IMG/VR virus record: IMGVR_UViG_3300042308_001616 | Location: 184,752 to 248,751 of that record | DNA: 64,000 nucleotides | Strand: one strand, 5' to 3' | Part shown: piece by piece, positions 42,401-44,549 of the stretch | Layout: every line of letters starts with the position of its first letter | Position numbering within the stretch: position 1 is the stretch's first letter | The notes under the pieces: model-generated | Seen by the model: only the letters and a program-made list of their open reading frames with translations | Database searches by the model: none | Told to the model about the DNA's origin: nothing | Translations under genes and position numbers: made by a program

Positions 42401-42462
42401 TTTGATATCAAAAATAAATACCTATCTTTGATGAACGATAACAACAAAAGGTCTTTGAAATA
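42401..42462 (+). promoter_or_regulatory. Sigma-A promoter (-33 TTTG, -7 TATCTTTG) followed by a boxA-like element
   Basis: TTTG 42401, TATCTTTG 42423, ggtctttgaaa 42450. Confidence 0.7.
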
Positions 42463-42568
42463 CTAAAATAAAAACTTAAACGAACAAAGTAAAAAACTCG
42501 TACCGACTCTTTACTGAGAGGTACATGTATATTAGAAGGCTGGTAAAGATCCAGAATGTTCGTTTTAT

Positions 42569-42649
42569 GCACTTGTGGTGGAATGGTAGACACGTATGCC
42601 TTAGGAGCATATGTCGAAAGGCGTGCGAGTTCGAGTCTCGCCAAGTGTA
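42569..42649 (+). tRNA. tRNA-Leu(TAG)
   Basis: tatgc-ct-TAG-ga-gcata. Confidence 0.9.
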
Positions 42650-42780
42650 CAAACCCTGCTTTGAAGTAAACAGATAACAATAACTATAGAGTAGTTTAGT
42701 TCATGTAAAAATAAAAGGAAGTCATGCCACCTTTGTTGTTATAATCCACAGTCAAGAGTGGAGTTGTTTATAGAGAAGAT

Positions 42781-42854
42781 GGTCTTATAGCTCAGTTGGT
42801 TAGAGCGCTACCTTGACATGGTAGAGGTCACCGGTTCGAATCCAGTTAAGATCA
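42781..42854 (+). tRNA. tRNA-Val(GAC)
   Basis: ctacc-tt-GAC-at-ggtag. Confidence 0.92.
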
Positions 42855-42935
42855 CAAATAAGTAGAGAGAACCAGTAGCACGCGGCTCGGTCCAGTATCA
42901 GTCATAATGCTAGAATACGTCATACTCTACTTAAC

Positions 42936-43008
42936 GGAGGTGAGGTCAAACGGTTAAGATGTCTGCCTGTCACGCAGTTCGGAGCGGGTTCAACTCCCGT
43001 CACTTCCG
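42936..43008 (+). tRNA. tRNA-Asp(GTC)
   Basis: ctgc-ct-GTC-ac-gcag. Confidence 0.88.
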
Positions 43009-43126
43009 CGCTAGCAAGTATTTGACGAAATCTTTAATAAGTCAAAATACTTTGAAAACACCCAAGTGGTTAAAGAACCTTCAACCTGGTAAACGGTGGA
43101 GAGAGGTACCCAAGCTCTCATTTTTT

Positions 43127-43200
43127 TCTCCCTTAGCTCAGTTGGTTAGAGCATCTGACTGTTAATCAGAGGGTCTCAGGTTCAAGTCCTGAAGGGAGAG
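43127..43200 (+). tRNA. tRNA-Asn(GTT)
   Basis: tctga-ct-GTT-aa-tcaga. Confidence 0.93.
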
Positions 43201-43206
43201 CTAAAT

Positions 43207-43278
43207 GGTTCCGTGGTGAAAGGGATATCACTAGAGATTTCTAATCTCTCGTTCCTGGTTCGAATCCAGGCGGAATCA
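43207..43278 (+). tRNA. tRNA-Arg(TCT)
   Basis: agaga-tt-TCT-aa-tctct. Confidence 0.88.
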
Positions 43279-43284
43279 CAAAAT

Positions 43285-43357
43285 GCCGTCATAGCTCAGT
43301 TGGTAGAGCGTTACCTTGGTATGGTAAAGGTCATCGGTTCGAGCCCGATTGGTGGCT
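43285..43357 (+). tRNA. tRNA-Thr(GGT)
   Basis: ttacc-tt-GGT-at-ggtaa. Confidence 0.9.
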
Positions 43358-43377
43358 CTGAAAAAAGTTCTAAAAAG

Positions 43378-43432
43378 TTTGGTGAAACAAAAAGAATCAC
43401 TAACTTTGTAAAACAAAAGAGATCTTTGACAT
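43378..43432 (+). promoter_or_regulatory. Sigma-A promoter followed by a boxA-like element
   Basis: TTTG 43378, TAACTTTG 43401, gatctttgacat 43421. Confidence 0.7.
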
Positions 43433-43452
43433 AATAACAAAATAACAAAAAC

Positions 43453-43524
43453 GGCACCATAGTTCAAGGGATAGAATAGAAGTTTCCTAAACTTTAGATC
43501 CAGGTTCGAATCCTGGTGGAGTCA
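43453..43524 (+). tRNA. tRNA-Arg(CCT)
   Basis: gaagt-tt-CCT-aa-acttt. Confidence 0.88.
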
Positions 43525-43535
43525 CTAAAAAAAGA

Positions 43536-43588
43536 TTTGGTAGATTCAAAAACTATACTTATCTTTGAAAACAAAACGTTCATTGAAT
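43536..43588 (+). promoter_or_regulatory. Sigma-A promoter followed by a boxA-like element
   Basis: TTTG 43536, TATCTTTG 43560, cgttcattgaat 43577. Confidence 0.7.
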
Positions 43589-43594
43589 AAAAAA

Positions 43595-43676
43595 GGCCTT
43601 GTGTTGGAAATGGTAGACAAGCACGTTTGAGGGGCGTGTGCCGAATGGCGTATGGGTTCAAGTCCCATCAAGGTCA
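43595..43676 (+). tRNA. tRNA-Leu(GAG)
   Basis: cacgt-tt-GAG-gg-gcgtg. Confidence 0.9.
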
Positions 43677-43724
43677 CAAAAGAATGCTCAGGCAACCCCC
43701 TGGTAAAAGCATTCGAAAATATAT

Positions 43725-43796
43725 TGCGGGATGGGGGAGTGGTCACCCCGCTGGGCTCATAACCCAGAGACATTGGTTCGAATCCTTTTCCCGCTA
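43725..43796 (+). tRNA. Initiator tRNA-fMet(CAT)
   Basis: ctggg-ct-CAT-aa-cccag (three G:C pairs); unpaired 1:72. Confidence 0.8.
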
Positions 43797-43903
43797 CAAA
43801 AATCCAGGCAACCCCCTGGTAGAAACAGAATGCTCAGGCAACCCCCTGGTAAAAAGCATTCAAAAAAATCAACCCGAAAGGCACAGGTTCGAATATATAG
43901 TAT

Positions 43904-44539
43904 ATGAGAAAATGTGAAAATTGTGAAACTGAACACACGGGTGAGTACAAATCTGGTAGATTTTGTTCTTTGAAATGTTCGAAATCGTTTAGCACCAAAT
44001 GCAAACGAAATGAGATAAACGAAGCAGTATCTGTAAAACTTACAGGAAGGGGTAATCCTCCAGTATCAAAAGAGTGTAAAAATTGTAACAATACATTCGA
44101 AGTTGAGTGGAGAAAAAGAAAGCAACTATTCTGTGGCAGATCGTGTACAACATCGTATAAAAATAAAACGATGAATATGGCAAGTCTGGGAGGTCTCAAA
44201 AGCGCAACTTCACAATCAAGAAGAAGCAAAAATGAGATTTTATTTTACGAAATGTGCTTAGAAAAGTTCCCCGATTCATTGGCAAACGAGCCAATTTTTG
44301 ATGGATGGGACGGAGATATAATCATTCCTTCTAAAAAAGTTGCAATACTTTGGAATGGTGTTTGGCACTACAAACAGATTTCTAAATCACAAAGTCTGAA
44401 ACAAGTACAGACACGTGATAAAATAAAAATCGAAAAGATTACACAATACGGATTTGTTCCGTATATTGTAAAAGATTTAGGAAAACACAATCCAACCTTC
44501 GTAAAAGAAGAGTTTGATAAGTTTCTAAAAGCTCTTTGA
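43904..44539 (+). CDS. Zinc-finger plus PD-(D/E)xK/Vsr-like endonuclease, probable free-standing homing endonuclease
   Basis: CENC...FCSLKC and CKNC...FCGRSC; SKNE, DGDII, ILWNGVWHY, RDKIK. Confidence 0.7.
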   Translation: MRKCENCETEHTGEYKSGRFCSLKCSKSFSTKCKRNEINEAVSVKLTGRGNPPVSKECKNCNNTFEVEWRKRKQLFCGRSCTTSYKNKTMNMASLGGLKSATSQSRRSKNEILFYEMCLEKFPDSLANEPIFDGWDGDIIIPSKKVAILWNGVWHYKQISKSQSLKQVQTRDKIKIEKITQYGFVPYIVKDLGKHNPTFVKEEFDKFLKAL

Positions 44540-44549
44540 AATGTTATAT

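Follow-up and report, generated by a model that had tools for sequence, protein, structure and literature searches.

The stretch analysed here, called the window throughout, is the final 64 kb of a 248,751-bp IMG/VR virus record (IMGVR_UViG_3300042308_001616; approximately 90% complete, approximately 35% G+C), and our subject is a set of boxA-like elements within its tRNA gene cluster. DNA of this phage has been detected in lake and river metagenomes from 14 studies, and it is therefore a freshwater jumbo phage. Antitermination by boxA and the Nus factors is textbook knowledge for the rRNA operons of Escherichia coli and for phage lambda, and is little studied elsewhere. An initial annotation of the window proposed that three promoters in the tRNA cluster are each followed by a boxA-like motif, that a fourth such motif precedes a tRNA-Tyr gene, and that two attenuated leaders in the same cluster lack it.

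Results

Organisation of the tRNA cluster

All of the 26 tRNA genes identified by ARAGORN in the whole genome lie in one cluster on the + strand (window positions 41084-46249), and an Rfam scan of positions 40000-47000 returned tRNAs only. Whole-genome searches of the phage found no gene for rRNA, NusB, NusG or the GOLLD RNA. Terminator-like sites with more than 6 stem pairs are present on the + strand only at 41400-41426, 45212-45235 and 45441-45470, and the cluster therefore reads as three units, laid out as follows.

Unit A, + strand: leader peptide, terminator, then tRNAs Asn to Leu(taa); boxA-less
boxA block, 42401 to the terminator at 45212-45235, + strand: promoters P1, P2 and P3, with 13 tRNAs and an HNH gene
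P1 segment, within 42569-45202, + strand: tRNAs Leu(tag), Val(gac), Asp, Asn, Arg(tct) and Thr(ggt) (ARAGORN, Rfam tRNA)
P2 segment, within 42569-45202, + strand: tRNA Arg(cct) (ARAGORN, Rfam tRNA)
P3 segment, within 42569-45202, + strand: tRNAs Leu(gag) and Met, the HNH gene, then tRNAs Tyr, Ala, Trp and Met (ARAGORN, Rfam tRNA)
45212-45235, + strand: terminator-like hairpin of 9 pairs with a T-rich tail, closing the boxA block
Unit C, + strand: leader peptide, terminator, then tRNAs Gln, Asp and Pro; boxA-less

From P1 to the second attenuated leader, the hairpin at 45212-45235 is the sole + strand site of this kind whose stem exceeds 6 pairs.

Three promoters are each followed by a boxA-like motif

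Scanning the window with the promoter pattern TTTG-N17-23-TAnnTTTG gave 12 matches. Three of these (P1, P2 and P3) are intergenic, lie on the tRNA strand between tRNA genes and have an A-tract upstream; the remaining nine fall mostly in coding sequence. With spacers of 18, 19 and 20 nt, P1-P3 agree with the Bacteroidota sigma-A promoter (TTTG at -33 and TAnnTTTG at -7, approximately 19-21 nt apart), and the same boxes recur 5' of Bacteroidota 16S genes. Transcription start sites at the three promoters are those predicted from sequence. The scan returned the -7 boxes starting at 42423, 43401 and 43560, just where the initial annotation had placed them, and the motifs reported there, correct in sequence and coordinates, lie 19, 12 and 10 nt after these boxes, within the 10-20 nt that had been proposed.

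42401-42430, + strand: P1; -33 TTTG, 18-nt spacer, -7 TATCTTTG, A-rich tract upstream (pattern scan)
42446-42461, + strand: boxA 1, core GGTCTTTGAAA at 42450-42460; -7 box 19 nt upstream; lies in the tRNA-Leu(tag) leader (138 nt)
43378-43408, + strand: P2; TTTG, 19-nt spacer, TAACTTTG (pattern scan)
43417-43432, + strand: boxA 2, core GATCTTTGACA at 43421-43431; -7 box 12 nt upstream, tRNA-Arg(cct) 21 nt downstream
43536-43567, + strand: P3; TTTG, 20-nt spacer, TATCTTTG (pattern scan)
43574-43589, + strand: boxA 3, core GTTCATTGAAT at 43578-43588; -7 box 10 nt upstream, tRNA-Leu(gag) 6 nt downstream

The form shared behind the three promoters is G[G/A/T]TC[T/A]TTGA. Each copy is on the same strand as all 26 tRNAs and downstream of a canonical predicted promoter, and motifs 1-3 are unpaired in centroid folds, in surrounding RNA that is A-rich and unstructured.

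A boxA consensus from Bacteroidota rRNA operons

Since no description of a boxA in Bacteroidota was found in the literature searched, a consensus was derived de novo. A pattern for the 16S 5' end fetched 120 loci of Bacteroidota genomes, which provided 103 usable leaders of 450 nt upstream of 16S. The most widespread 8-mers in these leaders were GTTCTTTG, TTCTTTGA and TCTTTGAA, with the -7 promoter box next in frequency, and the motif that these three define lies after TAnnTTTG promoters, 75-260 nt before 16S. An iterated 16-nt matrix identified a site in 96 of the 103 leaders, with the consensus AAAAG[T/A]TC[T/A]TTGA[A/C]A. Among those 96, G is invariant at core position 1, position 2 is occupied by T (78 leaders), A (16) or C (2) and never by G, and position 5 is T in 70 and A in 26.

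The rrn motif is also found further along the operon. GNTCTTTGA occurs 63 times at -300 to -1 and 17 times at +1500 to +2300, in the 16S-23S spacer, often as GTTCTTTGACATATTG, with zero occurrences inside 16S or 23S in this set. Its reverse complement does not accumulate anywhere in the rrn regions, which indicates a strand-specific linear element and not the arm of a stem; the possibility that the motif forms one arm of a leader-trailer processing helix was rejected, as no complementary partner was found in the rrn operons. Occurrence as a leader copy and a spacer copy is the hallmark of an rrn boxA. In some Bacteroidota lineages the spacer boxA precedes tRNA-Ile/Ala rather than trailing them.

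The boxA of Bacillus subtilis, AUGAUCUUUGAAA, binds NusB as observed by nuclear magnetic resonance, and the E. coli consensus is UGCUCUUUAACA (PMC13753749). The Bacteroidota consensus nearly equals that of B. subtilis. Rho is present in 5/5 Bacteroidota genomes examined, and NusB and NusG are present in Bacteroides thetaiotaomicron.

The rrn-trained matrix ranks the phage motifs at the top of the phage genome

The 16-nt matrix, trained only on Bacteroidota 16S leaders and without phage sequence, was used to score both strands of the 248,751-bp genome (approximately 497,000 positions). It can be seen from the ranking that the sites at 43417 (boxA 2, score 17.9), 43574 (boxA 3, 17.8) and 44527 (the fourth motif, 17.6) take ranks 1, 2 and 3, and that the site at 42446 (boxA 1, 14.9) takes rank 7, the other high matches being at gene starts or in coding sequence. 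Since Markov-1 nulls give approximately 1.7 matches scoring at least 14 per strand per genome, the chance of such a score within 30 nt behind a given promoter is estimated at approximately 2e-4; it was observed at 3/3 promoters.

The individual copies also resemble known elements. boxA 2 matches the B. subtilis NusB-binding consensus GAUCUUUGAAA at 10/11 positions and shares a 13-nt identity with the 16S-23S spacer boxA of a Bacteroidaceae genome, and the TCATTGA variant seen in boxA 3 is present in 26/96 host-phylum leaders. The initial annotation had argued from a likeness to the E. coli boxA; the phage motifs fit the consensus from the 103 leaders and the spacers of the presumed host phylum, the level to which the host is known. 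The mismatch to a host boxA that the annotation had named as a refutation is thus not seen at phylum level.

The promoter-boxA modules are conserved in a related contig

A single metagenome contig, L454, is 80-97% identical to the window across the cluster. Its promoter-boxA modules are 93% (P1), 98% (P2) and 93% (P3) identical, compared with 75% for the rest of the P1 leader, 84% for tRNA-Arg(cct) and 70% for tRNA-Met. Substitutions fall in the promoter spacers and leave the -33 and -7 boxes intact. The cores of boxA 2 and boxA 3 are intact as well, with motif 3 identical, and at P1 the boxA of L454 reads GTTCTTTGAAA, matching the consensus exactly, in place of the GGTC of the window. This pattern appears to fit purifying selection on the modules, the differences being few and the statistical power therefore limited.

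The Asn, Arg and Asp duplicates of the boxA block (42781-43358) are missing in L454. There, a stretch of only 56 nt (L454 2469-2524) stands in place of 42782-43320, the segment with Val(gac), Asp, Asn, Arg(tct) and the greater part of Thr(ggt). The breakpoints lie at or inside tRNA genes, suggesting gain or loss by recombination between tRNA genes.

Other routes to relatives were less productive. A search with the flanking open reading frame (ORF) at 46932-47816 found no close relative, and an exact 27-mer of tRNA-Arg(cct) had no match in IMG/VR. The M42-like peptidase ORF at 36596-37666, which has counterparts at 81-92% identity in phage contigs as long as 483 kb, returned 23 loci and was rejected as a guide, as the closest loci, fragments that are 16-23% complete, lack the tRNA region and the remainder are not syntenic.

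The module recurs before tRNA arrays and GOLLD RNAs

IMG/VR was searched with a composite pattern (promoter, 8-30 nt, GWTCWTTGAMA), using as control the same pattern with the motif read backwards. The samples are the first 115-119 loci returned and not a census, and the counts given here hold among the matches listed. A same-strand tRNA follows within 300 nt in 24/117 promoter-boxA matches and 0/119 reversed controls, often 10-20 nt after the boxA. Open reading frames contain 15 of the boxA matches, against 69 of the controls. In equal amounts of DNA, the loci selected by boxA carry 298 tRNAs and 32 further strong boxA matches, and the control loci 41 and 3.

A second large class among the same matches consists of a promoter, a small hairpin and boxA, with no ORF after it. 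At five of these loci the RNA downstream is GOLLD (RF02032, Rfam, 293-324 bits). The boxA of the GOLLD leaders is the consensus, of TTTGTAAAACAAATCGGAAACGTCCGATAACGTTCTTTGAAA type, and its order, hairpin then boxA, is that of rrn leaders. tmRNA-like genes and tRNA arrays lie near the GOLLD RNAs in those phage contigs. From these sequence matches, in phages with Bacteroidota-type promoters a predicted promoter-boxA module heads two kinds of long non-coding RNA, tRNA arrays and GOLLD.

Host genomes provide parallels at lower frequency. A strict pattern (GTTCTTTGA, 5-60 nt, TAGCTCAG) matched 13/201 Bacteroidota genomes, against 2 for its control; these matches comprise about seven stand-alone tRNA operons with promoter and boxA, and five spacer copies. 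In four host tRNA operons, one of which encodes Thr-Tyr-Gly-Thr, a promoter and GTTCTTTGA stand 12-30 nt before the first tRNA. The phage arrangement thus has occasional host precedents. The composite promoter-boxA pattern had 0 matches in five complete Bacteroidota genomes, because the rrn boxAs there lie further from the promoter or are variants.

The fourth motif belongs to a mobile HNH cassette

The fourth motif stands apart from the other three.

43904-44539, + strand: HNH homing-endonuclease ORF, 211 aa (phrog_1271 HNH endonuclease, E 5e-9), inserted in the tRNA array
44527-44542, + strand: boxA-like motif 4, doubtful; GCTCTTTGAAA at 44531-44541, 8 nt before tRNA-Tyr, without a promoter

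The motif is indeed at 44531, as first reported, and its position before tRNA-Tyr stands. Its standing as a fourth boxA is weakened: it has no promoter, overlaps the codons K-A-L-stop (TGA) of the HNH ORF, pairs with upstream ORF sequence in the predicted fold, and is part of a mobile cassette (approximately 43866-44547) that is missing in L454, where tRNA-Tyr follows directly without boxA. The HNH ORF carries the motif once more, at 43965-43973, where it is coding sequence (FCSLKC zinc-finger codons). The idea that motif 4 is an ancestral boxA split from its promoter by insertion of the HNH gene was rejected, as the cassette-less relative is also without the motif.

It is nevertheless possible, though on balance we doubt it, that motif 4 is also a working boxA that re-arms antitermination at the point where ribosomes finish HNH and the untranslated Tyr-Ala-Trp-Met genes start; the mobile cassette may have brought it along as a guard against polarity. 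Its position weight matrix (PWM) score of 17.6 is the third highest in the genome, it stands 8 nt before a tRNA, the order promoter-boxA-tRNA-Tyr occurs at two loci of other phages, an HNH ORF comes after a promoter-boxA at another, and rrn spacer boxAs likewise work without a promoter of their own. Set against this, L454 has the tRNA-Tyr but not the motif, the motif is made up of K-A-L-stop codons and predicted to pair with upstream ORF sequence, and codon content accounts for the second copy in the ORF.

In L454, a GIY-YIG endonuclease ORF lies between tRNA-Ala and tRNA-Trp (3440-4195), and the site corresponding to the HNH insertion is at 3027-3029. Different homing endonucleases thus occupy different spacers of the same tRNA array.

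Two attenuated leaders lack boxA

The two units that flank the boxA block each begin with a leader of a different kind.

41223-41433, + strand: boxA-less leader 1; -7-like TATATTTG, 36-codon ORF, intrinsic terminator at 41400-41426; before tRNAs Asn, Asn, Arg, Ile, Thr, Cys and others
45281-45477, + strand: boxA-less leader 2; -7-like TATATTTA, 32-codon ORF with PQDQDQP, intrinsic terminator at 45441-45470; before tRNAs Gln, Asp and Pro

The best boxA PWM scores in these leaders are -4.4 (leader 1) and 2.5 (leader 2), bearing out the earlier observation that the motif is lacking there. From their sequence, both boxA-less units (41223-41446 and 45281-45484) resemble attenuators that act on tRNA genes through the ribosome, with a strong intrinsic terminator behind each leader ORF. 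Codons for Asn, Thr, Ile, Arg and Cys abound in leader ORF 1 (MKATNTNMTIVRN...), matching the tRNAs Asn, Asn, Arg, Ile, Thr and Cys that come after it, and the PQDQDQP of leader ORF 2 precedes exactly the Gln, Asp and Pro tRNAs. Leader 1 is 90% identical in L454 and 74.5% identical in the 642-kb phage LR756502.1, where the homologous leader (cf. L453 8021-8474) encodes an Asn/Leu/Thr/Val-rich peptide and is followed by tRNAs Asn, Asn, Leu, Val, Ile, Thr, Val, Thr, Leu and others. The leader peptides and tRNA sets of the window and of LR756502.1 thus co-vary.

According to ARAGORN, units with and without boxA alike contain Asn(gtt), Arg(tct) and Asp(gtc), in agreement with the initial annotation. 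This redundancy is lineage-specific; it has no counterpart in L454 and is therefore recent.

Other features of the cluster and its surroundings

Small hairpins of CCAGGCAACCCCCTGG type with an A-rich run recur in the tRNA spacers (43690-43712, 43806-43822, 43836-43858 and 44796-44812). They are conserved in L454 and may be processing or protein-binding sites. Stretches resembling the T-arm of a tRNA (GGTTCGAAT) are present at 41940-42020, 43870-43900, 44640-44880 and 46135-46172, where ARAGORN calls no gene; these may be fragments or unusual tRNAs. The tRNA-Asn at 41531-41619 has an extended insertion, giving a length of 89 nt. Auxiliary metabolic genes lie near the cluster, namely a nicotinamide phosphoribosyltransferase (53639-55171; phrog_448, E 2e-149), the M42-type peptidase-like ORF (36596-37666) and a transaldolase-like ORF (37782-38438), the last two assigned by eye.

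Discussion

A model for transcription of the boxA block

Judged from sequence, it is most likely that true rrn-type boxA signals are present at 42450, 43421 and 43578. The boxA reading of the initial annotation gains from the match to the Bacteroidota rrn boxA, which goes beyond a likeness to E. coli, from the canonical promoters, from retention in a relative and from recurrence elsewhere; it loses ground at the fourth motif.

We consider it fairly probable that promoters for the host RNA polymerase, combined with rrn-type boxA, protect the long untranslated tRNA transcripts of this phage from Rho. In this model, host RNA polymerase with sigma-A would start at P1, P2 and P3, and the nascent RNA would expose a linear, unstructured boxA within its first 10-30 nt. 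The host NusB-NusE(S10) dimer would bind boxA and, with NusA and NusG, would turn the polymerase into the termination-resistant form that Bacteroidota would normally use on rRNA operons. The 2.8-kb, near-wholly untranslated transcript (42431 to 45212-45235) would be spared from Rho, and elongation may be faster. Having several modules may allow the complex to be loaded anew once RNase P has cut off each leader, by analogy with the rrn spacer boxA. Nus binding, protection from Rho and a difference in expression between the units are what we infer from this arrangement. The absence of boxA from the attenuator units would fit this scheme, since a polymerase in the antiterminating state would run through a regulatory terminator. 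For the same reason, that such a polymerase would defeat an attenuator, the two-class model of the initial annotation, constitutive against inducible, is a coherent proposal.

A number of observations weigh against this model. The first group concerns the motifs themselves. boxA 1 has G at core position 2, which is seen in 0/96 host-phylum leaders; the phage boxAs are nearer the promoter (10-19 nt) than those of most rrn leaders (approximately 20-100 nt), and they are without the second conserved block (ATTGRAA) that is common after rrn boxAs. The motif is also not specific when taken by itself. In two complete host genomes, 51/58 matches to the bare 11-mer are not rrn spacer copies and are mostly coding; the clearly functional copies there are those in rrn spacers only (6/28 and 1/30), and bare 11-mer counts were rejected as diagnostic, the excess over the reversed control in some hosts being coding sequence. 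A PWM score of 21.0 inside the GIY-YIG ORF of L454 means that S-L-K-type codons mimic the motif. The second group concerns function. Unit A is an untranslated array of approximately 950 nt without boxA, so that boxA is evidently not indispensable; at another locus (L431) several tRNA promoters are without boxA; and LR756502.1 has the homologous attenuated leader but an array without boxA. Finally, the presumed host is described by no more than 'freshwater, Bacteroidota-type promoters', and RNA runs contain only 5-11% of the words.

Alternative explanations

The alternative that survives best, though we regard it as unlikely, is that the motif is an RNA processing or chaperone signal, a site for a maturation factor (e.g. 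an RNase) that trims the leaders of rRNA, tRNA and GOLLD, with no role in termination. The motif is always found in leaders or spacers beside the ends of mature stable RNAs, 6-110 nt before tRNA, and the Nus complex itself has a known role as a chaperone of rRNA folding, so that termination may be secondary. The motif has no complementary partner and so is not an RNase III stem, its sequence matches the boxA of other phyla, and RNase P makes tRNA 5' ends without a sequence signal, all of which count against a processing site.

Slightly less probable again is a DNA-level element, that is, a downstream promoter or transcription-factor site of strong stable-RNA promoters that acts on initiation and is not an RNA signal. 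In the phage the motif is never more than 20 nt from the -7 box, its core TCTTTGA resembles that box (TATCTTTGA at P1 and P3), and a literature search found no experimental work on Bacteroidota rrn leaders. Such an element is difficult to reconcile with the second rrn copy, which sits in the 16S-23S spacer at 1.5-2.3 kb beyond the promoter, with a distance to the -7 box that varies from 8 to more than 100 nt, with strict strand specificity, or with near-identity to a boxA shown to bind NusB (PMC13753749).

Fortuitous, functionless matches in A/T-rich spacers are the least probable explanation and are strongly disfavoured for motifs 1-3. In their favour, host genomes have a chance copy of the 11-mer about every 100-150 kb, usually within coding DNA, S-L-K type codons give strong PWM scores and the motif was defined after being seen. 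Against them, a matrix built from host leaders only places the sites at the top of the phage genome, all three promoters carry the motif, with a chance estimated at 2e-4 for each, L454 has conserved the motifs, and tRNAs follow 24/117 of the listed IMG/VR matches and none of the 119 controls.

Significance

We found no account in the literature searched of boxA in phage tRNA arrays, and the case described here is a known element in a new setting, the tRNA arrays and GOLLD RNAs of Bacteroidota phages. If the rrn-type boxA reading is correct, it would give one of the major bacterial phyla its boxA consensus, account simply for the survival of long untranslated tRNA and GOLLD transcripts of phages in Rho-bearing hosts, and provide a compact natural part of 55-60 nt, comprising promoter and boxA, for expression of non-coding RNA in Bacteroidota. 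The neighbouring leader-peptide attenuators would be a contrasting, regulated mode within the same cluster. More tentatively, and with some reservation, Bacteroidota phages may as a general strategy copy the host rRNA promoter-boxA, so as to bring Nus-modified host polymerase to all of their long non-coding genes, tRNA arrays and GOLLD alike, without an N-like protein, adding in this case two attenuators to give an always-on and an on-demand supply of tRNA. The on-demand tier would then act when charged host tRNA runs short, through leader peptides written in the codons of the tRNAs that they control.

Comparison with known systems

tRNA clusters of T4-type phages carry homing endonucleases, for example segB in the T4 tRNA region, and resemble the present cluster in being phage tRNA arrays interrupted by mobile HNH/GIY-YIG endonuclease genes; we know of no description of boxA or Nus-dependent control for T4 tRNA genes. 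Lambdoid nut sites (boxA and boxB, with N protein and host Nus factors) offer an analogy in that a phage would use a host-type boxA on its own transcripts to attract host Nus factors. At P1-P3 no hairpin of the nut kind was found between promoter and boxA or just after boxA. No N-like protein is known here; N proteins are too small and too divergent to be picked up by a family scan. Moreover, the target here is non-coding RNA and not delayed-early mRNAs, and the rrn-like arrangement would need no phage factor. The leaders of phage GOLLD RNAs, in which the hairpin precedes boxA, likewise have the rrn order and not the lambda order.

Use of boxA outside rRNA operons has been described in Gammaproteobacteria, where it lies upstream of suhB and of CRISPR arrays and protects the latter, which are long untranslated repeat arrays, from Rho (PMC5725501; mentioned in PMC13753749). 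The likeness lies in the use of boxA outside rRNA operons; the differences are the phylum and the consensus, and that the element is here carried by a phage, where tRNA arrays and GOLLD take the place of crRNA arrays.

The closest comparison in sequence is the rrn boxA itself. Relative to rrn, the phage copies are on a phage genome, before tRNA genes only and closer to the start site, and lack both a boxB-like hairpin and the ATTGRAA block. Shared with the rrn boxA of E. coli (UGCUCUUUAACA) and B. subtilis (AUGAUCUUUGAAA) is a linear, strand-specific motif of 11-12 nt with the core G-N-U-C-U-U-U-R-A, which stands just behind strong promoters that serve long untranslated stable-RNA operons and recurs inside the operon. 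In gene order, the nearest parallels are the stand-alone tRNA operons of Bacteroidota, which have the same succession of promoter, boxA and tRNA, with 12-30 nt from boxA to the first tRNA. Such operons are rare (approximately 7/201 genomes, and none among the 58 motif matches in two genomes), whereas the present phage has three such modules packed into 1.2 kb.

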